Shown: positions 12,245 through 58,160, numbered from the stretch's first letter. The stretch: 64,000 nucleotides of DNA from Macrostomum lignano (GCA_002269645.1 NIVC01000109.1:62001-126000), one strand, 5' to 3'. Numbers and translations: made by a program. Notes: generated by a model not told the origin, from the sequence alone.

Positions 12245-15200
12245 TCAGCCCTCAGCATAGTAGTACACAGCCTGGAATGATTTGCCGTATTGAATCAATT
12301 AGAATCATTCTTTACAATACGTACCTGCTACTTATAATAGAAGTAGTATACACAGCTACATTGCTGAATATTTTTACCATAAGCTCAAACTAAATTCTGT
12401 AGAGTGTTCTACCTCCCGCAAAAGTAAATTGACAATTGTAGAATGCTACTATAAGTGAGTAAGTGCACGCATGTGCACCTAAACTTTAAGGATGATTCAT
12501 GTTACTATTTTTAGCAAATGAATCATGTTACTATTTATAGCAGATTAATCACGTTGCTATTTTAGCAAATGAATCATGTTACTATTTATAGCAGATTAAT
12601 CACGTTGCTATTTTAGCAAATGAATCATGTTACTATTTATAGCAGATTAATCACGTTGCTATTTTAGCAAATGAATCATGTTACTATTTATAGCAGATTA
12701 ATCACGTTGCTATTTTAGCACATGAATCATGTTACTATTTATAGCAGATTAATCACGTTGCTATTTTAGCACATGAATCATGTTAATATTTTTGGCCTAC
12801 GAAATCGTCCATAAATACAAGCGGTTCAAAGCGGTACCGGAGTCATTCTCCCCATGGAAGAGGAGCGCTCCAAAGAGGAAGTTCTTAGCGAGACTTTCTG
12901 ATCACCAAGTCAATCGAGACTCGGTCGAGTTGTTGCGGTAAGCCTTTCTCATTAGAGAATCTATTAGAGATTACCGGAGCATTACCTAGAGTGCATAGAG
13001 GCACTACTAGAAGGAGAAGGCTAAAGAGAAACCGCTATTCGGCGCAGGGTACCCATTGTTTGATACGAGGCCTCTGATTGGTCCTGACTGCAGATACCGG
13101 CCGGAAACTACTTCATCGGAAGTACCAGGAGAAGCAGGACCAGAACAACAGATTCAATATTCTTCCGGAAGACAACGGACGAGATCTATTGTGAGATCTA
13201 CAACGAGAACTACTGAAGAGATCTCTCATACGAAGTCAAGGTAAGCAGTACCTTCAATTGATAACGGGGTTGCCTAGCTAAGTGCTAGAAGTGATTGTTC
13301 CTTGATTACAGAGAAAGTCTGGTAATAAGGAACACATCAGTTCTAAGAGTTTCGGTAAACTGATTTCGCAAAGCTTACGTTCGGGTCAGCGGCCCTAAGC
13401 GCTGTGGCAGCCGGCAGCTCCACTGCAGAGGCTTTGCTTCGACGGCCCGTTGCTGGCAGCCGCTTCAGCAAGGCAAAAATCGCCACAGCTGAGACAGCAG
13501 AAACTGCAGCCAGCGAACAGCAAATTACAGCAGTTTTATTAACCCCTCTGGGCTTGTGGAGCTCGCAGTTTGCTACAGAGAAAAGTACATGTACTTTTAG
13601 CATCACTTTGTGCACTTATTAGGACCTATTGTTTCAGAAGTACACAAAGACTTGCTCACTGAACAGGGCTTGAAAAGTTTTCGAGTTCTCCGTCAAAAAC
13701 TTGGGATCTTCGAAGCCAGTTCGGGCCTGGTTGGTGCGGCACGTGACCACGACCTCAGCCTGCTGCTCGCTGAACCGGTGGAACACTCGAGCTCTCCGAA
13801 TCCAACCACCGCAGATGCCCCGCAGATCCACTTCTGTCAGCAGCTGTCAATCAAAGTTAAATTAAAGGTGTGAATCAACTGTCTAAAGAAGACGTAAAAA
13901 CACCAACCGTACCACCAGTTGCATTGTTCCGACAGTCTCGGATCTCAGCAGACACTGCAGCTCCGGCCTCGGGTTTCCCTCCTCCACAAGCACAGTCAGA
14001 TTCAAGTCAAAACCATTGAGCAGCTGGCCTGAGATGTCGATGCTCTCTGGAGGGACTGTTGAAGAATTTCAGACAATGAAAAGCTCCTCTATGAGGTCAC
14101 ATTAGTTTTAAATCAATAATTTTTAAACATCCACATCAGATTTAACTGGTAACCTGGTTCCGCATTAGATTTTTAAAATCCAACTTCGAGTATATCGACT
14201 CCAAGGCAACTAACAAAAGAATTTATGGAAAGAGACAATACGAAAATTTAACATGCATCCAAAAACAAGCAGAAGTACATGGACACTTACACAGAACTGC
14301 AGGCAGCTCGCGACGAGCCGTTACATCGAACAGTCCTGACTGGTTCACCCGACACGAAACTGATGCTGAGCTTCCCCAGCTCCTGCTCACAGTCACTGAG
14401 AATGTGCTGCTTGAGTTCGTGCTCTGAAATGAGTCAGTTTTCACAGCTAAATGTCAGGTCATTGTTGCCATGCACCCAATACACAGGTGCAACCATGGGC
14501 TGTGAGACTCACTGACAGCAGCTGAAGCGCTGTGTTTCCATTTCGCTGTGACTGGACAGAGCAGCTGTGGCTGATTGGCATCCAGTAGCAACCCGGTGTG
14601 TCAGCTGTCAGATTGACGGCTGCTCCGTCTGTCCAGCTGGTGTTTGCGGGGAGCAGCAAGTGAGTGGTGCAGGGCTCTGGAAGGGTTTGAGTAGTGAGTG
14701 GTGCAGGGCTCTGGAAGGGTTTGAGTAGTGAGTGGTGCAGGGCTCTGGAAGGGTTTGAGTAGTGAGTGGTGCAGGGCTCTGGAAGGGTTTGAGTAGTGAG
14801 TGGTGCAGGGCTCTGGAAGGGGTTGAGTAGTGAGTGGTGCACGGCTCTGGAAGGGTTTGAGTAGTGAGTGGTGCAGGGCTCTAGAAGGGTTTGAGTAGTG
14901 AGTGGTGCAGGGCTTTGGAAGGGTTTGAGTAGTGAGTGGTGCAGGGCTCTGGAAGGGTTTGAGTAGTGAGTGGTGCAGGGCTCTGGAAGGGTTTAAGTAG
15001 TGAGTGGTGCAGGGCTCTGGAAGGGTTTGAGTAGTGAGTGGTGCAGGGCTCTGGAAGGGTTTGAGTAGTGAGTGGTGCAGGGCTCTGGAAGGGTTTGAGT
15101 AGTGAGTGGTGCAGGGCTCTGGAAGGGTTTGAGTAGTGAGTGGTGCTGGGCTCTGGATTGTCTTCATTGTTATGATTGCCTTTCGCTCTAATACTCATGT

Positions 15201-17645: not shown

Positions 17646-17859
17646 TTAAAAATTCTTCTGATTGTCTCTTATTCTAGTGATGGCCAAGTCAAACAGATGG
17701 ACGAATTCGCTTTAATATCCGTGCTGGATAAAGTCAGGTTTTGCAACTGATCTCTCTTGTCTGTTGTTCGTCACGATTCGTTTACAATGCGGAACCGTTG
17801 AATGTTAGATATAAATTAATGAATTGGAGAAAGGTATATCCTGAAAAATTTGGTCTATT

Positions 17860-19787
17860 CTTGTCTAATCTTGTCTAATCTTGTCTAATCTTGTCGAATC
17901 TTGTCGAATCTTGTCTAATCTTGTCTAATCTTGTCGAATCTTGTCTAATGTTGTCTAGTCTTGTTTAATCTTGTCGAATCTTGTCGAATCTTGTCTAATC
18001 TTGTCTAATCTTGTCTAATATTCTCTAATCCTGTCTAAGCTTGTTTAGTCTTGTCTAATCTTGTCTAATCTTGTCTAATCTTGTCTAATCCTGTCTAATC
18101 TTGTCTAATCTTGTCTAATCCTGTCTAATCTTGTCTAATCTTGTCGAATCTTGTCTAATCCTGTCTAATCTTGTCTAATCTTGTCTAATCCTGTCTAATC
18201 TTGTCTAATCTTGTCTAATCCTGTCTAATCTTGTCTAATCCTGTCTAATCTTGTCTAATCTTGTCTAATCCTGTCTAATCTTGTCTAATCCTGTCTAATC
18301 TTGTCTAATCTTGTCTAATCTTGTCTAATCTTGTCTAATCTTGTCTAATCTTGTCTAATCTTGTCTAATCCTGTCTAATCTTGTCTAATCTTGTCTAATC
18401 CTTCTAATCTTGTCTAATCTGGTCTAATCTTGTCTAATCCTGTCTAATCTTGTCTAATCTTGTCTAATCTTGTCTAATCTTGTCTAATCTTGTCTAATCC
18501 TGTCTAATCTTGTCTAATCTTGTCTAATCTTGTCTAATCTTGTCTAATCCTGTCTAATCCTGTCTAATCTTGTCTAATTCTGTCTAATCTTGTCTAATCA
18601 TGTCTAACCTTGTCTAATCTTGTCTAATCTTGTCTAATCTTGTCTCATCTTGTCTAATCTTGTCTAATCCTGTCTAATCTTGTCTAACCTACTTTAATCT
18701 TGTCTAATCTTGTCTAACCTACTTTAATCTTGTCTAATCTTGTCTAATCTTGTCTAATCTTGTCTAATCCTGTCTAATCTTGTCTAATCTTGTCTAATCT
18801 TGTCTAATCTTGTCTAATCTTGTCTAATCTTGTCTAATCTTGTCTAATCTTGTCTAATCCTGTCTAATCTTGTCTAAGCTTGTCTAATCTTGTCTAAGCT
18901 TGTCTAATCTTGTCTAATCTTGTCTAATCTTGTCTAATCTTGTCTAATCTTGCCTAACCTTGTCTAATCTTGTCTAACCTACTTTAATCTTGTCTAACCT
19001 TGCCTAATCTTGTCTAATCTTGTCTAACCTTGCCTAATCTTGTCTAATCTTGTCTAACCTTGTCTAAGCTTGTCTAATCTTGTCTAATCTTGTCTAAGCT
19101 TGTCTAATCTTGTCCAAGCTTGTCTTATCTTGTCTAATCTTGTCTAATCTTGTCTAATCTTGTCTAATCTTCTCTAATCTGGTCTAATCTTGTCTAATCT
19201 TGTCTAATCTTGTCTAATCTTGTCTAATCCTGTCTAATCCTGTCTAATCTTGTCTAATTCTGTCTAATCTTGTCTAATCCTGTCTAACCTTGTCTAATCT
19301 TGTCTAATCTTGTCTAATCTTGTCTAATCTTGTCTAATCTTGTCTAATCTTGTCTAATCTTGTCTAATCTTGCCTAACCTTGTCTAATCTTGTCTAACCT
19401 ACTTTAATCTTGTCTAATCTGGTCTAATCTTGTCTAATCTTGTCTAACCTTGCCTAATCTTGTCTAATCTTGTCTAACCTTGTCTAAGCTTGTCTAATCT
19501 TGTCTAATCTTGTCTAAGCTTGTCTAATCTTGTCCAAGCTTGTCTTATCTTGTCTAATCTTGTCTAATCTTGTCTAATCTTGTCTAATCTTGCCTAACCT
19601 TGTCTAATCTTGTCTAACCTACTTTAATCTTGTCTAATCTGGTCTAATCTTGTCTAATCTTGTCTAACCTTGCCTAATCTTGTCTAATCTTGTCTAATCT
19701 TCTCTAATCTGGTCTAATCTTGTCTAATCTTGTCTAACCTTGCCTAATCTTGTCTAATCTTGTCTAATCTTCTCTAATCTTGTCTAA
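17860..19787. repeat. 10-bp satellite (ATCTTGTCTA)n, ~190 units, with higher-order repeats
   Basis: Direct observation; variant blocks recur at 420-bp and 220-bp spacing. Confidence 0.98.
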
Positions 19788-20699
19788 TTCAGACAGGCAT
19801 GTGGTGTAAAGTTGAATAACTCTAAAACCCATTATCTTTCCTTGCATTCTGCCATCCATTCTCTTTAGTTCGTATACAATTTGCAAATTAGCCTGAACAG
19901 TCAGGTAATTTTGAATTTAAAAGTCAGTTTTAGCTTAGAAGTTCCACAACCACATTCTCTGCCGGAAGCGAAGTTATAAAGTCTTCTATGTAAAGAAAAA
20001 GTTATATATTATCTGGAATAAAATGCTGAACTGTGATATGCCTCTGGTATATTTGTCTCAGACAAGCAAACATTCTCGCTTCAATTAGATAGCAATGCTA
20101 AAATTAGTAACTGTCAAAAGTTACTGGAATCGGATAGTTTACAGGATTGGAGAGCACAGGTCTTTGGAGTTTCTAAACGAAACAGGTGACTAAAACGCAA
20201 TGATGATTCCATATTTAGAAGCAAATATTAATGCATAAACATTCACAAAAGTCGCCAAGACTTGAAACCAGTCGGGCAGAATAAACAGGAATTCATATCG
20301 AATTTGAATTATAGATGCTTTTGCTAACAAAAGTATCAGTTAGTGCTTAGATACGGTTGCATACCCTTTAGGGGAATCTTGCTGGAGTACAATATAAACA
20401 TTGTGGTTCATAAATGTTTGGGTCTATTATTTGAATCATGCATCCGCATTGAGATGAGTCTTTAGTCACGCAGTTTGGAGCTCAAGTTTGAGCTGAAATT
20501 GCTTGGAAAATGCTTGGATACAACTGGAGATACTGGAGTTGCAGAGTAGCATAAAGTAGAAAGTTTTATGTTGACCCTATTTAAAGGCCATTGCAGTTAA
20601 TACCTGTGGGTACAAGCGCATATGCTTTGGTGTGTTGTAACAGTGTCAATAAGGAAGATTAGAAAATTTTGAATTCTACAGACAATTCTTCCAATACGA

Positions 20700-21712
20700 T
20701 TCTCCAAATACAATTCCCCAATACAATTCACCAGTACAATTCCCCCAATACAATTCCCCCAATACAATTCCCCCAATACAATTCCCCCAATACAATTCCC
20801 CCAATACAATTCCCCCAATACAATTCCCCAATACAATTCCCCCAATACAATTCCCCCAATACAATTCCCCCAATACAATTCCCCCAATACAATTCCCCCA
20901 ATACAATTCCCCCAATACAATTCAATAAAACTTTTATGTTGGTGTTAAGCTTCATTTTTCTATTACTTATTAAACGAGCATCGCTACCAATACAATTCCC
21001 CCAATACAATTCCTCAATACAATTTCCCAGTACAATTCCCCCAATACAATTCCCCCAATACAATTCCCCCAATACAATTCCCCCAATACAATTCCCCCAA
21101 TACAATTCCCCCAATACAATTCCCCCAATACAATTCCCCCAATACAATTCCCCCAATACAATTCCCCCAATACAATTCCCCCAATACAATTCCCCCAATA
21201 CAATTCCCCCAATACAATTCCCCCAATACAATTCCCCCAATACAATTCCCCCAATACAATTCCCCCAATACAATTCCCCCAATACAATTCCCCCAATACA
21301 ATTCCCCCAATACAATTCCCCCAATACAATTCCCCCAATACAATTCCCCCAATACAATTCCCCTAATACAATTCCCCCAATACAATTCCCTCAATACAAT
21401 TCCCCCAATACAATTCCCCCAATACAATTCCCCCAATACAATTCCCCCAATACAATTCCCCAATACAATTCCCCAATACAATTCCCCCAATACAATTCCC
21501 TCAATACAATTCCCCCAATACAATTCCCCCAATACAATTCCCCCAATACAATTCCCCCAATACAATTCCCCCAATACAATTCCCCCAATACAATTCCCCC
21601 AATACAATTCCCCAATACAATTCCCCCAATACAATTCCCCCAATACAATTCCCCAATACAATTCCCCCAATACAATTCCCCCAATACAATTCCCCCAATA
21701 CAATTCTCCAAT
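20700..21712. repeat. 14-bp minisatellite (AATACAATTCCCCC)n
   Basis: About 65-70 units with a ~65-bp unique interruption at ~20925-20990; begins ~14 bp past the stop codon of paralog C. Confidence 0.98.
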
Positions 21713-21725
21713 ACAAAGGCGTCTC

Positions 21726-24700
21726 TCAAGCGAACACCATATTCCCATCGTCGTCCATGTGACCAACGATGTGCAGGTACAGAGTCTCCAGGCTGCCCGA
21801 CGGGTCAGTGCCCGACCCGATCACCGTGGCATATTCGGTGTTGTTCAGTAGGTTCTACAAATGGCAGAGCGAATGGGTGCAGAGAGCAACTCGGTATCGT
21901 GCAACAGTGTAAAATATAACCGGAAAAAATACTTGGATTTTTGCTACGGAAAATTACTTGTATTAGGAAAATGCCTTGCGAGAGCCAGAGACTGATGAGG
22001 CTAACCCATAGACATAACCAATCCTGCCCTATATCGCGTGGTTTGACCATAGACTTATCCAATCCCGCATGCGGGGGCGTAGCCCAGTGGTCCAGTGTGG
22101 CGCTCTGATGTGCCAGCGGCCCAGGCTCGATTCCTAGTGCAGTCGCATTAATTTGGGGCTAAATTGAAATCTCGGCTTGGCTCTGCTCGTGCAATTAACA
22201 TCCTTGAGGGCCAACCCCCAAAGCACAGTGAAGTGTACATAGTGTAAATAAAGTTAGGGCCGCTCATTCACTCCTGTGTAGTGTGCCTGCGTATGACTGC
22301 GTACGTATCCGCGCGCTTGTGTGCCTTTGCTCAGGGGAGTCGGCTGAATGGGTAGTAATGCCTCTCGCCGGTTGTGTGACAATGTCGCTTAAAGTGCGCC
22401 AGGGTAGTTTAGATGTTGCCACAACTGGTGACTACATGCCTAAGTTGGAACTTCTGTCTAACGCTTTAGCTCGTACACAACAAATTTCTCTGAATCCAAC
22501 CTTGTACAGGTAGTGCGACCGCATGAAGTCCTGCTCCAGTTCCAGCGACGTGTGGCGATATGAGTCATTGACCTGCTTGCCCGACGGCTCTCCCAGGGTG
22601 ACCCCGCGACGGCGACGCAGCAGAACTGGCACGGCCACTAGAAGCAGCAACAGCAGAAGCAGCACCGGCAGCAGAAATAGCAGATTTTTGTTTCCATTGC
22701 CTCGGATGATTGGCAGTTTAGCTAGAATTTAAAATAGCCCAGACCGTGACATTTTATTGCAAAGCATAGTTAATTATCTGTTATAAGTATTTAAGAAATT
22801 ATTTTTTGAGTTTATCGCTAAATCTATCGAAAAAGATTCACAAGCTACTACTTCTACGATGCATTTGCTTCTTTCGATCAATACTTTGCTTTTTTATTAT
22901 TGGCGTGCAAACTTTAATTAGGCTTTAATTAAGCTCGAAAGCTTTAGATCCAAGACAAAAAGAATTGGATGCTCAAATTCATAGTTATTAATAGATTTCA
23001 CAGCATTCGAAGCAATACTCACTCGGGGCATCATCTGTCGAGTTGAGAATCCAATAATGGGTCTTGGAGAAATTCACTTTTCCATGTTGTGAAATCACAC
23101 AGGAAATGTTGATTTCATCGTTGTGAGCCTCGAGCAGGTGAGTCAAGCTGTGAGAGGCCTGGCCTGTCTGAAGAGCCAAGGCGGTGTCAGAGGAATTCTA
23201 CAATGAGATACCATAAGATATTTATACTTGTGATAATTACGAGACGATATGACATTTTTTGCGGCTGACTGACCAGCTGAGCTCCGTTCGCAAAGCACTG
23301 AGCCTCGGGACTCGGATTGCCATCGGAGATGTTCAGCATTGCAGAAAAACTGGTTCCGTTAAAGCTTGGGTCGGACAGATTTACGTAGGGCTCGTCTGAG
23401 GGTGCAGAATGCATTGGTGCATTTTACGAGCGTAAGTGCATTGGTTCTGAGGCTTCCTACAAATTTTCTGCTCATCGAATACCTGCAGGATGTCAGGAGA
23501 GACACTGAACACAAAGAATCCTCTTTTCTTTCTGTATATCCTGAACCTACTACGAGTATATACAGACTGTGGTGCTGACGTAAAAGTGAATTGAGCTAGT
23601 CTGAAGCTAGTTCGAACTCGTGACTAAGAAAATGCAGCATTTATGTTTTAGAGATCAGACTTTCTTATCGACTCTAAATAAAACTAATGAACTAACGATG
23701 CTGTTATAGTTTCAACTTGAAGTTATAAAACTAAAAAGAAAATTAGTACAGCAAACCTGCTTACAGAAAACGGTGATGTTTTGCCGAAAATTGCTGCTCA
23801 GATCTTCGAGGCCCGTCTGAGAGACGCTGCACGCCACCGAGCCGCCGTCCATCCACCTCGTGGAGTTAGCGCTGAATTTCGTGCTCTGACCCGACTGAGT
23901 CCCATCAATGCTGCTCATGCTTATATTCACACCCTGAGCTGTCCGCAGCCAGCACCGGTGACTGGGCTCAGGGTTGCCACCGAATGACCGAACTGAGACT
24001 GACACGGGCTCGCCCTCCTTCATCACCAAAGGCTGGGTTGCATTCCATGAGCTGATTGGTGCATCTGTAGATCGTTAGATAGAGAAAAATATTTTACTGG
24101 AGAGTTCACATTGGAAACAACTACAAGTTACACTCGTGAAGTTTGAAAGCAATCCATGAAGCATTTAATTCGCTGTAGAGAACTCACACAGTACACTGAT
24201 GGAGTCACTGGTGACTGACTGCTTGAATATGATGGAGCCGTTTGAAGCCGCTTGCTCAACTTTACAGCTGATATTATTTCCATTGTCACTTGTCAGTACA
24301 TCGATTGTCCACACGGATGACGCATTTGACTCCACAGGTCTCTGCAAGGTACTCGTACAAGCCATTGTGTCAAATTTCGAGATACAAACAATTCTTCGCA
24401 AGCGCTTCTGTGACCTCACCTGGATTTGTGTTAAACCTCGCTGAGCAACTCTGCAGGAGTGCCGACCGGGCGGGTTTCCTTGACCGGATGCCAGCAGGGT
24501 CACTCGAACTGCAGATCCGTTGCGAATCCGCCTTGACGACAGATGGACCGACAAGTTGCGGTTTCGGTCTGAAAGCGAGAGGAAAAATTGGCACCTGTAT
24601 GCAATCAATTTTCTATACAAAAGACACAAGAGATGAAGCACATGCTTACAAAAAACGGTGATGTTTTGCAGAAAATTGCTGCTCAGATCTTCGAGGCCGG

Positions 24701-27700
24701 TCTGAGAGACGCTGCACGCCACTGAGCCGCCGTCCATCCGCCTTGTGGAGTTCGCGCTGAAGTTGGTGCTCTTCGCTATGCTGCCTGTCTGATCCGATTG
24801 AGTTCCATCAGTGCTGCTCATGCTTATATTCCCACCCTGAGCTGTCCGCAGCCAGCACCGGTGACTGGGCTCAGGGTTGCCACCGACTGACCGAACTGAG
24901 ACTGACACGGGCTCGCCCTCCTTCATCACCAGAGGCTGAGTTGCAGTCCACGAGTTGTTCGGTGGATCTATGCATGACAGAAAATGTTGTTACATATTAT
25001 ATTACATGTAAATATTTTATATCCCGGATGCTTCTGTGGATACTAAACTAAGTTTACGAGTACAGTGATTGATTTTTCGCTCCACTCAAACGAACCGAAC
25101 TTGGTTTTTGTCTTTTCAAAACTATATTTTGCGGTGAATTTTTCCTGATTTAGTAGGGAAAAATCTTTTAATTTAGAGTTAGAAATCAATGTTTCTTGGA
25201 AACTATCAACAGACAGTCGCTTAATGGGTAATTTCGGTGATCAGAAAACTCACACAGCACACTGACTGACCCGCTGCTCACTGACAGGTTAAACACGGCT
25301 GGACCGTCTGCAGCAGCTTGCACGGCTTGGCAGGCGACTCTCAGCCCATTGTCACTGGCCTGTGCTCTGAATGCCCACACAGATGATGCATTCGAGTCCG
25401 ATGCTTCCTGAAAACACGCATTCAAATTTATGAAGCAGGAGCTAAATATCATAGGCTGGCTTTTGTTAACTGATTCGAATTTTATTACCTTTTCTTTGCT
25501 CAGACTTCTTCCATCCAGCTGACAGAAATGCTGAGCAGGCGGATTTCCCCGATCAGAGGCCAGCAGCTCAACTTTAACATTTGAGCCACTTCGAATACCG
25601 CCTGAAGGGATTCTGATGGATGCGCTGCTGATGGGATCTGAGAGTTTAACATAAAGATGAATTATTTCAGGAACAATTACCTACGATTTTCTTAACAAAG
25701 TCTATATGCACATGCATGTTACAGACAGACTGTACACCAAGATTTATGCGAGTGAAAAGGGGGATAGAAGTACCTTGTGTACTATATTCAATTTGACAAT
25801 CGTCAAGCCAAGAGCATGATATAATTTCATTTCCCCCTTTTTCAGATGAGTATGCTTTGATACAGTAATTATTACTAATAGACGAATGGCTTTAGGAATC
25901 CGGTATGAGCAAAAATTTATCTGTATTGAAGCGAATGTCGATTTCATATTGAAATTCATTCGGCATTACTTGCTCTGCTAAACCAATCAATGCATCATTT
26001 CCTATCAGAAATATGTCTAGCTGAAGTACCATAAGCTGTGTACACATCTAAGCTATGTACACATGAAATCCAGCCTGATTTCATTTTTAAATTGTGGCTC
26101 ACAATAAACGGTCACATTTTGCTGAAAATATCCAGCCAGATCAGTGAAATTCTGCTGAGACACCCGGCACAGCAAAGCGGCTCCGTCCATCCGCCTCGTG
26201 GAGTTCGCGCTGAAGTTGGTGCTCATCGCTATGCTGCCTGTCTGATCCGACTGAGTTCCATCAGTGCTGCTCATGTTTAAATTCCCACCTTGAGCTGTCC
26301 GCAGCCAGCACCAGTGACTGGGCTCAGGGTTGCCACCGACTGACCGAACTGAGACTGACACGGGCTCGCCCTCCTTCATCACCAGAGGCTGAGTTGCAGT
26401 CCATGAGTTCCTTGACGCATCTGTTGAACAAATCAATTCATTTCGATTGCGTTCCATCCACTCAGAATCATAACAATGGGAAACAAAAACGACCCGAACT
26501 CACAGAGCACATTGAGTTTGTCACTGACTACTGACTTGTTGAACAAAACTGTGCTGCTTTCAGTCATCTGCAAGAGATCACACTGGATTTGCTGTCCGTT
26601 GTCTCCGGCCAGAGCTTTCAGTATCCATAGCGATGAAGCATTTGATTCAGATGGAGGCTGGAATCAGTTTAGGGAACGAGGTTATTGTCATGTATCACCT
26701 GTCAGTCAAATACTACAAACTACAGCCTTACCATAATCTGTGTGAGATTCCTTCCAGAAGCAGAGCAGCTGTGCAGAGACGGAGGATTTCCGCGGTTAGA
26801 GGCAAGCAGCAGAATTTGAGCTGAGGAATTCGCTCGGATCTGCGGTGCGGCCAGTCTGATGGAGGCGCTCCGCACTGGGTCTGCGGTGTTTTCATATGAA
26901 ATTGGCTACTGTGTAGAAATTGTGTCGCAAACAATAATATCAACTATCCACCAAGTGACTCACACAGAGCAGCTGGCAGCGGATGCCGGGCCCACGTCTC
27001 GATCAGTCCCGACTGATTCACCAGACACGCAACGGATGCGCTGCTGCCCCACCGTCTGCTCACAGTTACTGAGAATGTGCTGCTTGAGTTTGTGCTCTGA
27101 AGTGAGTTCAGCTCATGCTGTTTTCTGCGGGTTTTGCAACTCAGCTGCAAAACTGTAAAATACTCACCGAGACAATCCGCAGTGTCGAGTTCGGTACTCC
27201 CTCTGACTGCAGAAAGCAGCTATGGCTGGTCGCCAGCCAGTTTCCTTGAGATGAGTCAGCTGTCAGATTGACAGTCGCCCCGTCTATCCAGTTGGAGTCT
27301 GGCGGAAGCAAAAACCGAGTGATGCAGGGCTCTGGAAAGGTTCGAGACGTTGGTGAGATGAGAATTGTTGCTGTTTGAGCAGTGAGAGCTGACTCACCTT
27401 TTATCTCAGGTATCTGAGCTGAGACTGTTGTTATGGTCTGACTGTTGCACTCGAGGCTGCAAAATAATGTTCCGTTCTGATAGCTCAGCGATACCGGAAC
27501 GCTGAAGTACGAGATGAGGTCAAAGCTCATATTTCTGTTTTTTGTGATGAGTTTCTAAAAATTCAAAATGCCACAGAAGACTTCCATTCAGATACTGAAT
27601 GATTGTTTTAAAAGTATTTTTAAAAATTGCGAACATGAAATTTTTATTCTCACTTCAGATATTGCCTTCAGTTCTTTACTCGAATCAGTTGCATTCGATA

Positions 27701-30329
27701 CAGACAATGCCACCGAACACTTGTGCACAGGCATTGGAAACGAGCCTTGAGTGATGAATGTGAAAACTGCAGTACTGTTGACCACCCAGTGCTTAGTGAA
27801 GCCAAGGTTCAGCTGAATGGAGGTTGGGATTTCTGAAATGTTTAGAGCTGGTGCACATACTCTGGAGCCAAACAGCTCGCTACTTCCCCAAAAATTCCCC
27901 AGAACACAAACAGCTCGCTACTTCCCCAAAATAATTCCCCAGAACACAAGTAGCTCGCTACTTCCCCAAAAATTCCCCAGAACACAAACAGCTCGCTACT
28001 TCCCCAAAAAATTCCCCAGAACACAAACAGCTCGCTACTTCCCCAAAAAATTCCCCCAGAACACAAACAGCTCGCTACTTTCCCCAAAATAATTCCCCAG
28101 AACACAAACAGCTCGCTACTTCCCCAAAAATTCCCCAGAACACAAACAGCTCGCTACTTCCCCAAAATAATTCCCCAGAACACAAGTAGCTCGCTACTTC
28201 CCCAAAAATTCCCCAGAACACAAACAGCTCGCTACTTCCCCAAAAAATTCCCCAGAACACAAACAGCTCGCTACTTCCCCAAAAAATTTCACAGAACACA
28301 AACAGCTCGCTACTTCCCCAAAAAATTCCCCAGAACACAAACAGCTCGCTACTTCCCCAAAAAATTCCCCAGAACACAAACAGCTCGCTACTTTCCCCAA
28401 AATAATTCCCCAGAACACAAACAGCTCGCTACTTCCCCAAAAATTCCCCAGAACACAAACAGCTCGCTACTTCCCCAAAATAATTCCCCAGAACACAAGT
28501 AGCTCGCTACTTCCCCAAAAATTCCCCAGAACACAAACAGCTCGCTACTTCCCCAAAAATTCCCCAGAACACAAACAGCTCGCTACTTCCCCAAAAAATT
28601 CCCCAGAACACAAACAGCTCGCTACTTCCCCAAAAAATTCCCCCAGAACACAAACAGCTCGCTACTTCCCCAAAAAATTCCCCAAAACACAAACAGCTCG
28701 CTACTTCCCCAAAAAATTCCCCAGAACTTAAACAGCTCGCTACTTCCCCAAAATAATTCCCCAGAACACAAACAGCTCGCTACTTTCCCCAAAATAATTC
28801 CCCAGAACACAAACAGCACGCTACTTCCCCAAAAATTCCCCAGAACACAAACAGCTCACTACTTCCCCAAAAAATTCCCCAGAACTTAAACAGCTCGCTA
28901 CTTCCCCAAAAAAATTCCCCCAGAACACAAACAACTCGCTACTTCCCCAAAAAATTCCCCAGAACACAAACAGCTCGCTACTTCCTCTAAAAATTCCCCA
29001 GAACACAAACAGCTCGCTACTTTTCCCAAAAATTCCCCAGAACACAAACAGCTCGCTACTTCCCCAAAAAATTCCCCAGAACTTAAACAGCTCGCTACTT
29101 CCCCAAAATAATTCCCCAGAACACAAACAGCTCGCTACTTTTCCCAAAAATTCCCCAGAACACAAACAGCTCGCTACTTCCCCAACAAATCCCCAGAATA
29201 GAGTCAACGCCCCACATTCAGAACTCACTGATTGACTTCCAACCGCGGAGTCCCAACGTCTGTGAAGTCACCGCCAGAACTCCATCAGTGCAGCTGTGCC
29301 GGCACTGCAGTGACGCACCATGCAGTTCCCAAGTCATGGTAATGTCGTTCAGAATCAGGAAACTTGGTCTATAAGTCTTCTGTACGATTGAAGGGAAACT
29401 TTAATGTAAAACTGTTTTACATTTTTACACTGCAATTTGATTTCGATTCAGTCCTTACGATGCTCAGGGCCGTGACGTCACCGCTACGGGTTCTGATGCT
29501 GCAGTTCACCGAGTCAGGCTTCTCTGAGTGGCACGGCAGCGACTCTTTAACCATCACCTTGTCATTTTGCGTCAGGTCTGACAACTGTTCAACAGAGCAT
29601 CTTTGTTTGCCTTCTGGCTTGCAAAAGTATTCTCTAAAGCAGCCAGACTCCTGTGCTTCATCTTGTTCATCTTCCTCAAGTTCCACCATCACGAAGTTCA
29701 TGTACTTGTCGGCTGCATTGGCAACGAATTTCCTCAGCAACACGAACCTCGGCAGCTGCAATGGGATTCAAAAGTGAGCGCAGCGAGTTCGAATATCGAA
29801 TGGATCCAGTAAGCGGGTGCCAAACCTTGGAATAATCCCGAGTTGCGCAGGTTATTTTGTATGAAAAGTTCGAGTTGCCAAAGTTTCCAGTGACTCCGCA
29901 CAGGTGAAATTCGATCAGACTGTGGTTGAAACTCGCGATGCAGTCAAGTGGACTCTCAGTCAGACCTGCCGGCATCTGGTGGCCGAGCAGAACCTCGATG
30001 CCCTGGGCCCTGACTTTTTCTGAAACTTTAGCTATATAATCAGGTATGATGTAAAATGGCTGTTCATTTGAATATTTAGTTTAAACAGCTACTTGAAATT
30101 GACAACTCACCGACATTCCTTCGGTGGACAATCACAGAGCGCACTGAAACACATCGAGCAAGTTTCACAAGCAGCCACTGGTAGCCAGAAGCATCTGGAG
30201 TGTTGCTGGAGTGAAAATAGTCCCATTGCCATGGTCTGGCTGATGAGTCACGGAAGCAGCCTTGTCTGTTGTATGCGGAAGATTGCCAGGCGTCAGAAAT
30301 CTCCTTGGCTGTTATGTTGACGCCAACGC
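21726..30329 (-). CDS. Receptor paralog C: F-type-lectin-like domain + ~10 Ig domains + TM + tail with two ITSM-like motifs; signal-peptide exon not found
   Basis: Lectin exons at 30329-30111, 30019-29826 and 29755-29459, then 29379-29229. Ig exons run from ~27835 to ~23030 (repeated GGNPEPSHRC and DRGNPP motifs). TM exon at 22700-22501 (LLFLLPVLLLLLLLVAVPVLLRRRR). Terminal exon at 21854-21726 (NLLNNTEYATVIG...ETLYLHIVGHMDDDGNMVFA*). Confidence 0.78.
22072..22160 (+). mobile_element. tRNA-related head of a second SINE family or a tRNA pseudogene
   Basis: GGGGGCGTAGCCCAGTGG A box and GGCTCGATTCCT B-box-like motif; no convincing cloverleaf. Confidence 0.45.
27865..29190. repeat. ~39-bp intronic minisatellite (CCCAGAACACAAACAGCTCGCTACTTCCCCAAAAAATTC)
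   Basis: About 34 units; the same array occupies the equivalent intron of paralogs E and G. Confidence 0.97.
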
Positions 30330-30920
30330 CTGCAGCATTGTTCGGTGAGGTGTGATGACCTTGGATTTCTTGATGGCGAAGTCGTTCTTCCCTATCGCTG
30401 CATAATGGCCCCGAGAGTCTCTTCGATGTCGCACGCGAAGGCGTATTCAGCATGCCAGTGAAGTATGAGACAGACTAGGCCTACGAGCTAAGGTCTGCGA
30501 TGCTTCACGCCTGCCCCTATCTTCAGCAGGTCAAGGCTGGTGGGAGGTCTGCACCCTCTATTTGCCTCTGGCAGCCGCAGACTCCCCCACGCTGTCTCGC
30601 AAGTGGACCCAGGGGTACTCGTCCCCGCGTGTGTTCAAGGCAGACCCTAGGGCTGCTGGACAGACTGGGCTCTGGCGCTGGCGACCCTATCCAGTGGCTT
30701 CGGCCGAATTTGGGTATGCGGGTCTGGCCCGCCAGCCTGCAGGCCGTGGTGCTGCTTAACGTACCCTCTAATGCCTAAGGTGTTTGACCGTGCCGATGGG
30801 CTGGAAGGCCGGGGAGTAGTCCGGTCGCTAGCGGTCCTTTTTTCAAACCGGCTGGCTTGAGGTGTCGGCCAGTCGGGAACTCAACTCGCGTAACGAGTAG
30901 CCCTCCCCCGCTTTTCAGCT

Positions 30921-32306
30921 ATGGCCACTAACGCCAATTTTATCAATGAAACTGACCCGGTCGCCACTGGCCCACCGGGATCAGCCGCTCTGGTAGCTAC
31001 CACTGGTAGCACCAACGCCCAACCTGGTCCAACCGGGCCAGCTGACGCTGCCGCCGAGCACCCTGGCCGCCAGTCTAGCCGACCGCGCACGGCCGAGTCC
31101 CGACGGCAGCGAAATATCCGCCGTAATCGTAAGCGGCAGGAGAAGCGGGCTGCTGCTGCGTCCGCGGAGGGCGGGCAAGCCGCGGTGAGGCCTTCGGGAG
31201 CCACCGCAGCGGGGAGGCCCTCTGGGGAGTCCGGTGGCGCGGCTGGGCCGTCAGGAACCGCCGTGTCCTCGGACTCTCAGGGGGGGGGGGGCAACCCTGC
31301 CGGCCTACCGCCTTCCAAGGACAAAGCGGCCCCGCTCAAGACCTCCGAGTCCTACGCCTCCAAGGTCAAGCAGCCGCTGCAACCCGCCGTGATGATCCTC
31401 GGCGGGGATTTTGACCTGACGCCCGAGCAGCTCGACGTCGCGTGGCGCACCATCGACGAGGGCTTGCTCAACCTAACCCTGGAGGGCGTCTTCGTGGACA
31501 TCGTCAATTCCACCAAGGCGAACGGGTGCATCCTACTGTGGTGCAAATCCGAGGAGAGCACCCAGCTCCTGCGGGATCAGCTGCCCAAGTTCGACTGGCA
31601 CAGTGACCTGGGCCAGCTGACCTTCGCCCTGGAGAGCGAGCGGCCGAAGACCATCCGCCATCGGATTTGGGTCCCGGCCGACAGTGCGATCAAGTCCGGG
31701 GAGCAGCTGCGGCAGCTCCTGCTCAAGCGGCACCCGGATCTCGACGCCAGTGGTCTTGTGTACCACAGCACGGTCCGCAAGGGCACGACCGGGGCCACCG
31801 TCATCCTCGGCCTGACGGAGGGATGGGCCAAGCGGCTACCGCACGGCACAAACCTCCACCTTGGTCTCCATCAACTGACCATCCTCCGCTGTGAGGAGGG
31901 AAAGGTGGAGACCAAGAACGACGGGAAGCGCGCCGCTCCCGGAGCTGGGGCTCAGGCTCCGCCGGCCAAGCGGCAGCAGCAACCCGATCCCGAGCCTAAC
32001 AAGGCTATTCGCGCTGCTGAGTCCGCCTCGCGCGGACGTAGACCCGCCCGCAGTAACCGGCGGTCCGGGCTAATCCAGCGCGCACTTGACGAAGCTCAGT
32101 CTCTGAGACTTCACCTCGAGCAGACTCGTGCTGCTCGCAAAAACACCGAAAGCCAGCCGAGGGAACTGGACGACGGCATGGCTCAGCCTTCCAACTGGTG
32201 GGATTACCACCAGGAGGACGCTGCCGGCCGAGCTCAGACTCCCGACGGCGGGGCGCAAGGCGAAGGCAGCAGCCGTACCCCAGTCGCTGGGGGGAGGGCG
32301 GTGTAG
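30921..32306 (+). CDS. LINE ORF1 (nucleic-acid-binding, gag-like)
   Basis: 461-aa ORF immediately upstream of the APE-RT ORF, with basic/low-complexity termini and a SYASKVK motif. Confidence 0.8.
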   Translation: MATNANFINETDPVATGPPGSAALVATTGSTNAQPGPTGPADAAAEHPGRQSSRPRTAESRRQRNIRRNRKRQEKRAAAASAEGGQAAVRPSGATAAGRPSGESGGAAGPSGTAVSSDSQGGGGNPAGLPPSKDKAAPLKTSESYASKVKQPLQPAVMILGGDFDLTPEQLDVAWRTIDEGLLNLTLEGVFVDIVNSTKANGCILLWCKSEESTQLLRDQLPKFDWHSDLGQLTFALESERPKTIRHRIWVPADSAIKSGEQLRQLLLKRHPDLDASGLVYHSTVRKGTTGATVILGLTEGWAKRLPHGTNLHLGLHQLTILRCEEGKVETKNDGKRAAPGAGAQAPPAKRQQQPDPEPNKAIRAAESASRGRRPARSNRRSGLIQRALDEAQSLRLHLEQTRAARKNTESQPRELDDGMAQPSNWWDYHQEDAAGRAQTPDGGAQGEGSSRTPVAGGRAV

Positions 32307-32457
32307 CGCGTCTAGGTGACTCACCTGCTGTGGGCGCCGTGTCCGCCTCCGCGGCGGCTGGGGAGGCGGCTGGGCCTGAGCCAATGGAAACTGGCGACTC
32401 AACTCTCACCGATGAGGCTGAGAATGAGTTGCTTTTCTCCTCCCCTGGACAGTAGAC

Positions 32458-33968
32458 ATGACGGTCTCCCAGGGCATCCACTGCTTGCAGGTCAACCTGC
32501 AGCACAGCATTGCTGCTTCGGTCATCCTCTTGAAGCACACTGACCAATACGCGCCAGGGATTATCCTTATCCAGGAACCTTGGACGCTAAGGGGCAGGCC
32601 CCAACATGTCCCCACCGGCTACCAGTGTTTAACCGCTGGCACCCGGGAGGGAAACCTGACACCAAGATCCTGCATCATGGTGTCCAGTTCTATTAACGCA
32701 TGGCTCAGATCGGACCTGTCCACCAGGGACATCTGTGTCATCCAGTCTGAAGACATACTCCCTGGGAGGACTACCCTCATCGCCTCGGTTTACCTACCGG
32801 GCGACGGCGAGATGATCCCAGGGGAGCTTGTCACATTGGTCGAGCTCTGCTCCACCAGAAATTATGAGCTGCTTGTGGCAGGCGATATCAACGCCCACCA
32901 TACCCACTGGGGCAGTTCTGATATTAACCAGAGAGGTGAATACCTCCTGGCTTATATTGCTACTACAACCCTTGAGTTCTGTAACTCGGGTAGTACCCCT
33001 ACCTTCAATAACGGACGCCGATCGGAGGTGCTGGACGCCACCCTCGCCACGCCCAGGCTCTTCCAGAGCACTAGGGAGTGGCGGGTGCTTCCTGAGGCGT
33101 CCCTCTCCGATCACAAGTTCATCTCTTTCACGCTGGCCAGCGCTCGAAACGCAGGCCAGCTTTACTGGAAACGGAATGCTAGGAATACCGACTGGACCGC
33201 CTTCAGGCTTGCCCTGGAGGAGACCTATCGTTGCACTAGCGCTCCAGTCTCCATCAACACCTGCGAGGAAGCAGATGATTTTGCGGCCGCACTTACGGAC
33301 TCGCTCACTGCTGCCTTCGAAGCCTCATGCCCACTAAAGGCATACAAAGGCAAACAGTCGGCCCCATGGTGGAACCCGCAGCTTGGCGACCTCCGTCGCA
33401 GAGCCAAAAGGCTTCACCGCAGGGCCCAAAAAACTAAAAACCCGGCCGACCAAACCGCCTACCTGAACTCTATCCACGAGTTCAAGAGGCAGGTTAGGAA
33501 CGCCAAAACCAACAAGTGGCGCGAATACTGTGAGGAACTTGAGGGCTCCCGCCCCACCTCCAGAATCGTTAAAGCCCTCACCCTGGACAAAGTGTCCAAA
33601 CTCTCCTCAGTCAAGAGAGCCGACGGCTCGCTCACTGAGAACCCAGGAGAAACACTGGAAGCGATGCTAACAGCGTTTTTCCCGAACGAACCAGCCAGGC
33701 CCGACCCCACTGACCACTCAGTGGGCGGTCACGTACTGGCTGACTCAATCATCACGGAGGACCGCGTTACTAAAGCAGTCTCCTCCTTCAAACCCTTCAA
33801 ATCCCCAGGACCGGACGGCGTTATGCCAGCCTTCCTGCGGGAGGCGGTGAAATGCACCGGTTTCCTGCAGAACCTTTGCCGGCTTCTGAAAGCTTGCATT
33901 GCTCTCGGCTTTGTTCCGAAACCCTGGACCGAGGCCAAGGTGGTTTTTATCCCCAAGCCCGGCCGGGG
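32458..33968 (+). pseudogene. LINE ORF2 5' part (APE endonuclease and RT N-terminus)
   Basis: APE motifs as above; ends at VVFIPKPG where the foldback insertion begins. Confidence 0.92.
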
Positions 33969-35733
33969 GGGGGGGTTTCACAAACTCGAAATTTCACAAC
34001 GTCGAAAGCACCCTCTTTCATAAGGTCGAAATTTCACAAGGTCGAAATTTCATAACATCGAAAACTCGAAAAGCAGCCACTTTCATAAGGTCGAAATTTC
34101 ACAAGGTCGAAATTTCACAACATCGAAAACTCGAAAAGCAGCCACTTTCATAAGGTCGAAATTTCACAACATCGAAAACTCGAAAAGCAGCCACTTTCAC
34201 AAGGTCGAAATTTCATAAGGTCGAAATTCCACAACATCGAAAACTCGAAAAGCAGCCACTTTCATAAGGTCGAAATTTCACAACATCGAAAACTTTAGCA
34301 AGAGACTTCATAAGGTCGAAATTTCACAAGGTCGAAATTTCACAAGGTCGAAATTTCACAACATCGAAAACTCGAAAAGCAGCCACTTTCATAAGGTCGA
34401 AATTTCACAAGGTCGAAATTTCACAACATCGAAAATTCGAAAAGCAGCCACTTTCATAAGGTCGAAATTTCACAACATCGAAAACTTTAGCAAGAGACTT
34501 CATAAGGTCGAAATTTCACAAGATCGAAATTTCACAACATCGAAAACTTTGACTTCATAAGGTCGAAATTTCACAAGGTCGAAAACTCAAATAGCAGCCA
34601 CTTTCATTAGATCGAAATTTTACAATGTAAAAACTGAGAATTTAGCAGCCTCAAGTATGAAAAGATCAAAATTTTACTATGTAGAAAACTAAAGTCTTTA
34701 TTGTGTCAATGTTTATATTATTATTTTTTGTTTTAATAGCTTTGGTTCAGAGAAGTTTTTAATCATCTCTTCTTTAAGTAGTTCAACGTCAAGGAGTGCT
34801 GAGTGCTCTGCTAAGTGTCTTATCACTACTGGGACGATGGGTTAGTTTACATAAGCTGTAAGTTTAGCTATATAGTTGGCAAGCATTTTGGAATTAGAGC
34901 AGTAAAAAGCACCTAAAATTTGGTATCAGAAGTAGGATAATTTAGGGGAAAAGAGAAAAACTTTGAAAAGAGAAAAAAGCCCTATAACTTTGGCAATGAC
35001 TGGTTAGGATAAATTAGACTAAGTGACAAACAGAAAAACACCTACAACATATATAGGCCTACTAAACAACAATAGAATATAGAAAAGCCTCGAAGGCTTA
35101 CAATTATTAAGTCTTCTGCTAGAGTTTTCGATGTTGTGAAATTTCGACCTTGTGAAATTTCGACCTTATGAAAGTGGCTGCTTTTCGAATTTTCGATGTT
35201 GTGAAATTTCGACCTTGTGAAATTTCGACCTTATGAAAGTGGCTGCTTTTCGAGTTTTCGATGTTGTGAAATTTCGACCTTGTGAAATTTCGACCTTGTG
35301 AAATTTCGACCTTATGAAGTCTCTTGCTAAAGTTTTCGATGTTGTGAAATTTCGACCTTGTGAAATTTCGATCTTATGAAAGTGGCTGCTTTTCGAGTTT
35401 TCGATGTTGTGAAATTTCGACCTTGTGAAATTTCGACCTTATGAAAGTGGCTGCTTTTCGAGTTTTCGATGTTGTGAAATTTCGACCTTGTGAAATTTCG
35501 ACCATATGAAGTCTCTTGCTAAAGTTTTCGATGTTGTGAAATTTCGACCTTGTGAAATTTCGATCTTATGAAAGTGGCTGCTTTTCGAGTTTTCGATGTT
35601 GTGAAATTTCGACTTTGTGAAATTTCGACCTTATGAAGTCTTCTGCTAGAGTTTTCGATGTTGTGAAATTTCGACCTTGTGCAATAATTTGCTTTTCGAC
35701 GTTGTGAAATTTCGACCTTGTGAAAGCACCCCC
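33969..35733. mobile_element. Foldback-type non-autonomous DNA transposon with long, internally repetitive inverted arms
   Basis: The left arm (~33969-34680) and right arm (~35115-35733) are inverted arrays of 16-bp AAGGTCGAAATTTCAC and ~30-33-bp subunits. Termini are GGGG..TTTCACAA, the spacer is AT-rich, and no TSD is visible. Confidence 0.85.
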
Positions 35734-37070: not shown

Positions 37071-37074
37071 CACT

Positions 37075-57300: not shown

Positions 57301-57939
57301 TCTGAATTTTTATTGATAGCTCGTACTCTGCATGGCCCACAGATTCTAATGCTCTTCACTTTTATTCATTCTGACTGACAGGTAATTCCTGAGCCCTATC
57401 ACACAGGCAGCAACCGGGGCTGGATTCGGAGAGTGCGACTCATTCATCGGTTTTCCGAGCGGCAAACTGAGGTTGAGGTCACTTGCAAGCTCAGCCAGCC
57501 TTACTCAGATGTTCTCAACCCATTCCCAGCTCTAACGATAAAAAGAACATTTCAGGGTGCTTTCGGTAAGTGTCTGAGTCGGTTTGATATCGATCCCATC
57601 CCAAATCCCAAAAACACAATTTCTCCTTTCAACAAAAGCTGCAGTATATAGATGGTCATTAACTGTCACGCCGGCTCCGACAGTTGCTGTACTCTGCTGC
57701 TTACTGGCCGTAGTTGCCGTGGCAACTGTCGCTGCTGTGCTCAAGAGGAATCGAGCTGCCGCTAGCGGTCGAAGAGATGGTGTCGAGCTGCAGGCCACTG
57801 GGAAACCGAACGACCCTAGCGTGAGTTGAGCAGCTTCATTGTTAACTTCAATACTTCATTCACGGAATTTCGCTAATGTTAAAGGTACATCCAGCAAATG
57901 TTTTTCTTACAGACTGTGTACTACGAAGCGGACAACTGA
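42384..57939 (+). CDS. Receptor paralog E: signal peptide + F-type-lectin-like domain + ~10 Ig domains + TM + short Tyr tail (multi-exon, apparently intact)
   Basis: Exon 1 at 42384-42444 (MDFSVNLAIFFICTLCCVGY). Intron 1 contains the Maverick. Lectin exons at 50648-50866, 50958-51151 and 51222-51518. Ig exons run from ~51600 to ~57565. TM exon at 57645-57820 (VAVLCCLLAVVAVATVAAVLKR). Terminal exon at 57913-57939 (TVYYEADN*). Phases were consistent throughout the manual walk. Confidence 0.82.
42540..43060. repeat. ~21-bp intronic minisatellite (ATATGGAAGGGCGAGTCGGGG), left of the Maverick
   Basis: Direct tandem units; continues at 49802. Confidence 0.96.
43061..43194 (+). repeat. Maverick left TIR
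   Basis: Near-perfect reverse complement of 49668-49801. Confidence 0.95.
44721..45258 (+). mobile_element. 5'-truncated LINE (RNase H C-terminus plus zinc-binding tail)
   Basis: WLQWIPSHIGIQGNEEADQEAK...LRCGH...CSFC...H...C, a (CA)n tail, and a 10-11-bp TSD (A)CAGCAGCAGC. Confidence 0.85.
45320..45690 (+). repeat. 90-bp coding tandem repeat x4
   Basis: AEVSLSDLIRDMDSGPAPPPPPPPTEVQPA repeated. Confidence 0.95.
46600..47060. repeat. 7/8-bp satellite (CCGATTC[A])n inside the Maverick
   Basis: Direct observation; abuts and truncates the capsid-like ORF. Confidence 0.96.
47040..47501 (-). pseudogene. N-terminal fragment of a Maverick minor capsid (penton, PX)-like protein
   Basis: IICSENAEGTPSDFHFHLPSPIYLDRNVDYEAGLAEIHLPAAWFNV resembles the Maverick minor capsid N-terminus as recalled (F...LP..i.L....evaL.ei..p..w.n). 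It lies directly downstream of the integrase and runs into the satellite. Confidence 0.6.
47514..48593 (-). CDS. int: Maverick c-integrase (DDE) with C-terminal chromodomain
   Basis: WEMDLVEM, RTDQGKEF and IIERWNRTLK motifs; chromodomain VIEKVL...YLVKWAGY...WVDEKDL; uninterrupted. Confidence 0.95.
   Translation of the reverse strand: MFLKMEKIYFNPNQPASYCSSSKLQHELRKRGEHIGVKSIEKWLSQQPVHTLHKPARVRFPRAPIIVRAIDDQWEMDLVEMIPFAKYNRGHKYILTCIDVLSKFAMARALKSKSAAEVKSAFESMLKSSKRQPRTVRTDQGKEFVNAIFRQFCIDRGILAFPTSSEHKAAIIERWNRTLKSKMWRYFTHNSTLQWLDVLPKLVKSYNNTFHRSIKTTPMNVSKANETEVWMNLYDGKAIETVEKLRKPKFCENQSVRISNAPRLFRKGYKANWSEEVYTIVFRAPKHYPYMYRIRDMKGEDIRGLFHEHELQAVPDSQRLYVIEKVLKTEKRKGKIRYLVKWAGYKSTDWVDEKDLRKV
48756..49519 (-). 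pseudogene. Tandem PC4/Sub1-like ssDNA-binding-domain protein with a 1-nt frameshift
   Basis: From ATG 49519: MDIGEGYKLQIQEYEGVMFIAIRKFY...LKPG, shifting into FNLNIRQWEKLKEL. A second unit, VPLTPPLWRKLWQYADWIDEQL, resembles the PC4 consensus ISL...QW..L....ID. Confidence 0.6.
49668..49801 (-). repeat. Maverick right TIR
   Basis: Ends CTACTACT, followed by TSD ATGGAG. Confidence 0.95.
49802..50540. repeat. ~21-bp intronic minisatellite, right of the Maverick
   Basis: Same unit as 42540-43060. Confidence 0.96.
51785..52190. repeat. ~39-bp intronic minisatellite (~10 units)
   Basis: Reverse complement of the 27865-29190 unit, in the equivalent intron of E. Confidence 0.96.
55113..55388 (+). 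mobile_element. tRNA-derived CORE-like SINE
   Basis: Same family as 17365-17645 (A/B boxes, GTGTCCTTG core, GCTGCGGCTGAGCTGTCGGTTGCACA 3' part). Confidence 0.85.
56452..56730 (+). mobile_element. tRNA-derived CORE-like SINE
   Basis: Same family; core reads TTTGTGTCCTGAGCAAGACACTTAACTCTACATTGCTTCAGTTCTCCCAGCTGTAAAATGGG. Confidence 0.85.
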
Positions 57940-58160
57940 ACGGCTTAAAAAACTGGCTTCTGTGTCTGAACTCTGACAATTAAACTGAACTTTTTTGTAA
58001 GACTTTTAAGATTACGGTTCGTCGATGGCTTTCTGGTTTAGCATGTGAATATTTATAATTTATTTATTCTTGTGATTTCAGCATTGTTTTTGTTTAATCA
58101 GAATCTGAATGTTTGGCATGCAAAAACATTGAATCAGGCAAAGCATTAAAACATTTAAAT

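Follow-up and report, generated by a model that had tools for sequence, protein, structure and literature searches.

A candidate unannotated terminal exon with two switch-type tyrosine motifs in an immunoglobulin-like receptor gene of the flatworm Macrostomum lignano

Macrostomum lignano is a free-living and genetically tractable flatworm, in which transgenesis and RNA interference are available. We analyzed a 64,000-nucleotide stretch of its genome (GCA_002269645.1, NIVC01000109.1:62001-126000; referred to as the window, with positions counted from its first letter), which carries a cluster of receptor genes, one of which is designated paralog C. As judged from its sequence, paralog C is a type I membrane protein with an immunoglobulin (Ig)-like ectodomain, and belongs to an M. 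lignano-specific cluster. A 129-nt minus-strand segment downstream of its transmembrane (TM) exon appears, with the balance tilting modestly in its favor, to be a genuine and unannotated last coding exon, spliced by the proposed junction 22501^21854. The predicted cytoplasmic tail carries two tyrosines, both in TxYxx[V/I], the pattern of the tyrosine-based switch motif of immunoreceptors (ITSM). Because a short motif and a predicted splice are involved, the exon is presented as a reasonable hypothesis at the level of annotation, and not as a discovery.

The translation of the segment (minus strand, 21854-21726) is NLLNNTEYATVIGSGTDPSGSLETLYLHIVGHMDDDGNMVFA, followed by a stop codon. Upstream of it, 15 of the 20 nucleotides at -23 to -4 are pyrimidines, and the acceptor itself (ttgtag/AA) is the same as the annotated acceptor of the gene C exon starting at 23197. 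The TM exon (22721-22501) finishes with ...CTG TAC AAG/GTTGGA, that is, on a complete codon, and the 22501^21854 junction is therefore in phase 0 and in frame. Direct reading thus agrees with the preliminary description of this DNA, which had stated a ttgtag acceptor, phase 0, and a frame shared with the TM exon. According to the same description, the exon had been overlooked by the open reading frame (ORF) track, and this also holds: the frame is open, the first ATG/GTG/TTG is a GTG at codon 11 (the first ATG does not occur before codon 33), and the frame is absent from the ORF list because no such start gives 60 residues. Since no start precedes codon 11, the frame, if coding, must be spliced to upstream sequence.

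Codon usage argues for the exon. A log-odds score, which was trained on 2281 codons of family exons and normalized to the base composition of each segment, gave the tail +8.5 bits (0.20 bits/codon) in the proposed frame and -8 to -23 bits in the remaining five frames; the family exons range from -0.02 to 0.42 bits/codon, all except one being at least 0.08. The score of +8.5 bits was attained by 0.12% of stop-free shuffles and by 2/230 open frames taken from non-coding parts of the window. The GC content at third codon positions is 0.76 in the tail and 0.68 in the TM exon, and the overall GC content of gene C introns is 0.39. Within the 6 kb that separate the TM exon from the next gene (22500-16500), the tail has the highest coding score among 503 AG-started phase-0 ORFs. 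Moreover, the same layout is found in all three paralogs with 3' ends in the window (B, C, and E), consisting of a TM exon ending in phase 0 and a short terminal exon.

A segment of this kind might also have arisen by chance, both as an open frame and in its motifs, within intergenic or 3' non-coding DNA, or it might be a remnant of another, decayed coding sequence, for instance of a transposon. An open stretch of 42 codons is by itself no rarity; approximately 13% of random frames of this length are open. Repeats surround the region, and many windows were scanned, so rare coincidences are to be expected. However, three independent unlikely features meet where a terminal exon is expected: the codon usage is frame-specific (p about 0.001-0.01), the frame opens precisely where a good acceptor ends, and in the required phase, and the motif pair is rare (9e-5, see below). 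The segment also occurs just once in the window and is without a transposon-like homologue. Therefore, a chance origin is considered improbable.

Several other observations weigh against the exon, the first of which concerns its donor. A position weight matrix (PWM) was built from 11 placeable family donors, all of which are GT[AG]AG or GTCAGT; these score 7.9-10.6 bits, whereas AAG/GTTGGA, with T at +3 and G at +4, scores -1.4 bits. It ranks 19/44 among the GT sites of the interval from the TM exon to the tail (22728-21855), and the PWM scan of this interval found no family-like GT donor close to where the TM exon ends. The general consensus is matched by the exonic AAG and by G at +5, and the donor appears usable in principle, yet it is the odd one out in the family. 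Second, neither AATAAA nor ATTAAA was found between the proposed stop and a 14-bp satellite, which adjoins this stop at a distance of 10 nt; for paralog E, an ATTAAA lies ~40 nt past the stop. Third, the public model of gene C (A0A1I8IYP7, hereafter P0001) stops at ...SHYLY (22504), 3 nt short of the donor, and does not contain the tail.

The search for homologous tails also weighs on this side. An exhaustive phmmer search of 1.84 billion representative proteins with the TM and tail sequence detected no homologue of the tail, and P0001 alone was returned, over query residues 3-75, which represent the TM exon. No tail homologue was found within the window, and the seven other public family models all end before the TM segment and tail, giving no tails to compare. 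The only other tails in the window, those of B (AVYYYAEG) and E (TVYYEADN), are unrelated to the C tail and contain no ITSM. Because neither the window nor the set of 1.84 billion proteins contains a homologous tail, the conservation of the motifs is neither supported nor contradicted. A word-indexed search with the same 118-residue query returned nothing, but it also missed P0001, which is identical to the query over 72 consecutive residues, so this result is uninformative. The indexed protein search is thus unreliable for negatives with short queries, as P0001 was missed there and recovered by the exhaustive search.

These observations could be explained if the segment lies outside the mature mRNA of gene C, either because the TM exon is the last one (the frame then reading through as far as the TAG at 22434-22432, or stopping where the public model does), or because the segment is a relic exon with a decayed donor. 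The atypical donor without a family-like GT nearby, the stop of P0001 at 22504, the missing poly(A) signal next to a satellite, and a tail carried by no protein in the searched collections all point in this direction. However, read-through past the donor gives VGFREICCVRAKALDRSSNLGM and a stop, with a score of -9.4 bits (-0.43 bits/codon), and this extension looks non-coding, whereas the tail is coding-like in exactly the frame required. The end of P0001 before the tail counts for little, because it is a poor automatic model in which half-domains are skipped, and the word-indexed negative is weak for the reason given above. In addition, a terminal exon further downstream is required in both B and E. 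A segment outside the mRNA is given a considerable chance, though one short of even. No hidden terminal exon of the VYY type seen in B and E was detected downstream of C in 22500-16500.

The tail exon contains two tyrosines, and 2/2 are located within TxYxx[V/I] motifs, namely TEYATV and TLYLHI. These are exact matches, as had been described previously. They correspond to Y84 and Y102 of a 116-residue composite C-terminus, the second tyrosine lying 18 residues past the first. When the 42 tail residues were shuffled, the probability of at least two TxYxx[VI] motifs was 9e-5, and that of at least two motifs of the looser class [STIVL]xYxx[IVL] was 6.6e-3. Two TxYxx[VI] motifs occur in 1/957 window ORFs of 30-80 residues, which is the C tail only, and when the entire window is translated in six frames, only 0.8% of tyrosines have an ITSM context. 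The motif pair therefore exceeds chance at the level of a single candidate tail. Provided that 22501^21854 is spliced as proposed, both motifs are located downstream of a 22-residue hydrophobic helix and RRRR, as the ITSM pattern demands. No canonical immunoreceptor tyrosine-based activation motif (ITAM) and no tyrosine-based inhibitory motif of immunoreceptors (ITIM) was found in the C tail.

According to a previous study, the ITSM of PD-1 in jawed vertebrates has the consensus (T/V)EYATIx(F/Y), and the C-terminal SH2 domain (C-SH2) of SHP-2 prefers (T/V/I)XpY(A/s/t/v)..(I/v/l) (PMC12151841, where the ITSM is also defined). Motif 1, with T at -2, A at +1, and V at +3, fits this C-SH2 preference, and TEYATV differs from the core TEYATI of PD-1 by one conservative change (V for I) at the last residue. 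Because no other similarity was detected in the exhaustive search, this likeness is a six-residue coincidence and not homology.

In the proposed mechanism, splicing of the exon by 22501^21854 would give a cytoplasmic domain of 81 residues with five tyrosines, of which the last two are in TxYxx[V/I]. Ligand-driven clustering of C might then allow a Src-family kinase to phosphorylate these tyrosines, and Src- and Syk-family SH2 kinases are possessed by flatworms (PMC3531407). The phosphorylated tyrosines could dock SH2 proteins, for which the best fit to T-x-pY-A-x-V would be a tandem-SH2 phosphatase of the SHP-2/Corkscrew type. This type is favored because of the 18-residue tyrosine spacing and the T at -2; both arguments follow what is known of ITIM/ITSM receptors (PMC12151841; see also PMC6994217 and PMC8631942). 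Paralogs B and E, whose short and tyrosine-poor tails end in VYY, would signal differently. Given a real exon, whether its tyrosines act as phosphotyrosine docking sites is put at about even, and the whole chain, from a real exon through docking of SH2 proteins, is only tentatively proposed.

Alternatively, the exon may be real while its tyrosines serve mainly as YxxPhi sorting signals (YATV and YLHI), which AP-2 mu would recognize to direct the receptor to endocytosis or to lysosomes, or else dock adaptors of another kind (a Grb2-type SH2 at YKN, for example), and do not form an ITSM/SHP-2 inhibitory module. TxYxx[VI] is a subset of YxxPhi, and both motifs are valid YxxPhi signals; the junction would itself create YKNL, which is both YxN and YxxL, and the C tail has neither an ITIM partner nor a canonical ITAM. 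To our knowledge, SAP and EAT-2, the adaptors that define the "switch", are confined to vertebrates, and we know of no SAP-type adaptor in flatworms. On the other hand, the T at -2 in both motifs is not needed for YxxPhi and is unlikely by chance (compare the two shuffling probabilities above), and A at +1 and V at +3 of motif 1 suit the C-SH2 preference of SHP-2 (PMC12151841). A role mainly in sorting or adaptor docking is regarded as unlikely, although less so than a chance origin of the frame. SH2 recruitment or inhibitory signaling by the C tail is plausible, but to call C "phosphotyrosine-signalling, possibly inhibitory" is to deduce a function from a pattern of six residues that at the same time fits YxxPhi, and the inhibitory sign cannot be inferred. 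The interpretation of C in the preliminary description thus stands in part: the exon is intrinsically plausible (codon usage, first of 503, good acceptor, layout shared with B and E) and both tyrosines literally fit the ITSM consensus, whereas the donor GTTGGA is an outlier, the sole public gene model stops before the exon, and no homologous tail was found.

The features of gene C, together with the terminal exons of B and E, are listed in Table 1. The tail is placed in the cytoplasm because the TM helix is followed by RRRR, and the TM exon itself encodes 39 cytoplasmic residues (RRRR and 35 more), three tyrosines among them. The last intron gave no match in Rfam. Strings resembling box A and box B of tRNA genes (GTAGCCCAGTGG ... 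GGCTCGATTCCTAG) are present once in the window, at 22060-22150 (plus strand) within this intron; a tRNA-derived short interspersed nuclear element (SINE) was considered there and dropped, as ARAGORN and Rfam were both negative and the intron is single-copy in the window.

Table 1. Positions of the proposed paralog C features, the terminal exons of paralogs B and E, and the adjoining satellite (a slash marks a splice boundary)
Feature	Position	Strand	Basis
Paralog C, proposed 3'-terminal coding exon, 42 codons and TGA (stop 21728-21726)	21726..21854	-	Translation, codon usage, ranking
ITSM-like motif 1, TEYATV (TxYxxV)	21822..21839	-	Pattern match
ITSM-like motif 2, TLYLHI (TxYxxI)	21768..21785	-	Pattern match
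Acceptor region, pyrimidine-rich tract (TCTCTGCACCCATTCGCTCTGCCATTTGTAG) then ttgtag	21855..21885	-	Direct reading
Proposed last intron of C, 646 nt, 49% GC, single-copy in window	21855..22500	-	Window comparison
Proposed C donor AAG/GTTGGATT, atypical for family	22493..22503	-	Donor PWM
Proposed junction string 22501^21854, CACTACCTGTACAAG^AACCTACTGAACAAC; longer 3' side AACCTACTGAACAACACC		-	Sequence reading
Unspliced continuation past 22501 into intron, GTTGGATTCAGAG		-	Sequence reading
TM exon of C: juxtamembrane segment, TM helix, RRRR, cytoplasmic stretch	22501..22721	-	100% match to P0001 residues 647-718
C TM helix LLFLLPVLLLLLLLLVAVPVLL, 22 residues	22683-22618	-	Kyte-Doolittle 19-mer mean 3.21
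C RRRR stop-transfer	22617-22606	-	Sequence reading
Ig-like and stalk exons of C, covered by model P0001	22991..27530	-	P0001 match, Pfam, PDB profile
5' exons of C, N-terminal domain common to family	29236..30324	-	tblastn of P0002, alignment
Terminal exon of paralog B, cag/AVYYYAEG and stop	12245..12271	-	cag acceptor, in phase with TM exon
Terminal exon of paralog E, cag/TVYYEADN and stop	57913..57939	+	cag acceptor, in phase with TM exon
14-bp satellite (ACAATTCCCCCAAT)n, ~74 copies, ~1 kb, starting 10 nt past proposed C stop	20682..21716		Repeat scan

The ectodomain of gene C is predicted to be Ig-like. Pfam C2-set_2 was matched by P0001 with 21.4 bits (cutoff 21), and a profile of six copies of the repeated Ig-like unit, run against PDB, matched constant domains of IgG/IgE, the best of them at E=9.6e-5, and aligned with the poliovirus receptor along its entire length (E=0.05). 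This evidence is marginal but consistent, and would place gene C in the immunoglobulin superfamily. The N-terminal domain of the family had no Pfam or PDB match in profile searches, and the name "MATH domain-containing" carried by one UniRef relative was not reproduced by these searches. AlphaFold2 prediction of the paralog model P0002 from a 3-sequence alignment had a mean pLDDT (predicted local distance difference test) of 27.9, which is too poor to confirm an Ig fold.

The conceptual protein from the Ig-like exons of gene C matched four M. lignano UniRef "Ig-like domain-containing proteins", the best of which, P0001, fits gene C exon by exon. The search with P0002 added three more proteins only, all from M. 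lignano and all ending before the tails; the family is therefore lineage-specific in the databases, given that all matches are from M. lignano. Other public models (A0A1I8GAA5 and relatives) match B-type paralogs. Compared with 27530-22504, P0001 skips several half-domain exons, and it includes neither the N-terminal exons (30324-29236) nor the lysine codon that closes the TM exon. Re-annotation is needed for the receptor family as a whole.

At least five family loci are present in the window, near 4.2-4.8, 12.2-16.4, 21.7-30.3, and 50.6-57.9 kb, and from 62.2 kb onward. The short VYY tails reported earlier for B and E are confirmed, as both terminal exons follow their TM exons in phase 0 (AAC/GTAAGC at 13379 in B; AGC/GTGAGT at 57820 in E). 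The TM segments of B and E (AVICCSLAAVSAVSAVAIFALL and VAVLCCLLAVVAVATVAAVL, respectively) contain no charged residue, and their tails contain no ITAM. In paralog B, a 34-bp tandem array (102-bp super-unit) at 14659-15157 (minus strand) is open in frame, with PAPLTTQTLPEPCTTHYSNPSRALHHSLLKPFQS repeated, and the next Ig-like exon begins with its last unit (...PEPCTTHLLLPANTSWTDG); the array may represent either a minisatellite derived from an exon or a coding repeat of mucin-like type.

Gene C (21700-30450, minus strand) and the plus-strand paralog (50600-57940) are arranged head to head as inverted duplicates. At the protein level, the identity between the two amounts to 80-95% for the 5', N-terminal, and Ig exons, whereas the stalk, TM, and tail exons are unrelated, and the TM and tail exons of C are single-copy in the window. 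This pattern suggests a recent partial duplication or gene conversion limited to the ectodomain. An intronic 39-bp minisatellite is common to both genes (27869-29198 and 51779-52183) and occurs a third time at 63403-63662. A 21-bp tandem repeat (GATATGGAAGGGCGAGTCGGG) is present three times (42528-43059, 49811-50543, and 61612-62166). Two of the three are situated just upstream of 5' exons belonging to plus-strand members of the family, and the repeat could represent either a promoter-proximal element that these genes share or a portion of the duplication unit.

Gene C is separated from its inverted duplicate by retroelements, and elements of this kind were located at 6721-10725 (+), 30921-37134 (+), 37019-38395 (+), and 47514-48593 (-). 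They include a Ty3/gypsy-type element with an intact gag-pol ORF of 1334 residues (reverse transcriptase, RNase H, integrase, and zinc knuckle), a long interspersed nuclear element (LINE) with endonuclease and reverse transcriptase ORFs, which is broken by 16-bp/65-bp tandem arrays at 34005-34625 and 35125-35685, and two more fragments that carry an integrase, one of which has a chromodomain. A large part of the region between genes C and B is taken up by a 10-bp satellite (GTCTAATCTT, ~194 copies, 17853-19788) and the 14-bp satellite (20682-21716).

The vertebrate ITIM/ITSM receptors of the immunoglobulin superfamily (PD-1, PECAM-1, SLAM family, and G6B-b) are likewise type I proteins with an Ig-like ectodomain and a disordered tail, in which two (T)xYxx(V/I) tyrosines are ~20 residues apart, a spacing that suits tandem SH2 domains. 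However, C shares no sequence homology with them; its predicted ectodomain has many C2-like Ig repeats and an unmatched N-terminal domain instead of one V-set domain, and its tail would have two ITSM-like motifs without an ITIM. The single V-set domain, the ITIM followed by an ITSM, and the homology that mark the PD-1/CD28 family are thus not found in C. In its genomic organization, the cluster, with its recently duplicated genes and similar ectodomains, is reminiscent of the Alr family of Hydractinia, which likewise comprises clustered, lineage-specific Ig-like genes with highly divergent tails, some of which have ITAMs or ITIMs (PMC9546547), and of the fester-type receptors of Botryllus, which follow a similar logic of clustered, fast-evolving Ig-like receptors (PMC12582321). 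These belong to other phyla and have unrelated sequences, and only one paralog in the window (C) has the motifs; moreover, exon use in Hydractinia was verified by expression, whereas the C exon is read from the genome.

Compared with paired clusters of the KIR/LILR type, near-identical ectodomains with differing tails are found in the window, whereas B and E offer no counterpart with an ITAM or a charged TM residue, and the analogy with paired receptors would hold by half. The cluster might be a flatworm counterpart of paired immune-type receptor clusters, with shared ectodomains, an SHP-2-recruiting long tail in C, and VYY tails in B and E, which functions in self/non-self, mate/sperm, or microbe recognition; this is a distant prospect, and if true, no such system would have been described before in Platyhelminthes. 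If the exon proposed here is real, the signaling end of this M. lignano receptor is absent from its public model, and a flatworm would possess a lineage-specific Ig-like receptor with immunoreceptor-type tyrosine motifs, which would extend ITIM/ITSM-style signaling, as found in vertebrates, tunicates, and cnidarians, to a flatworm.

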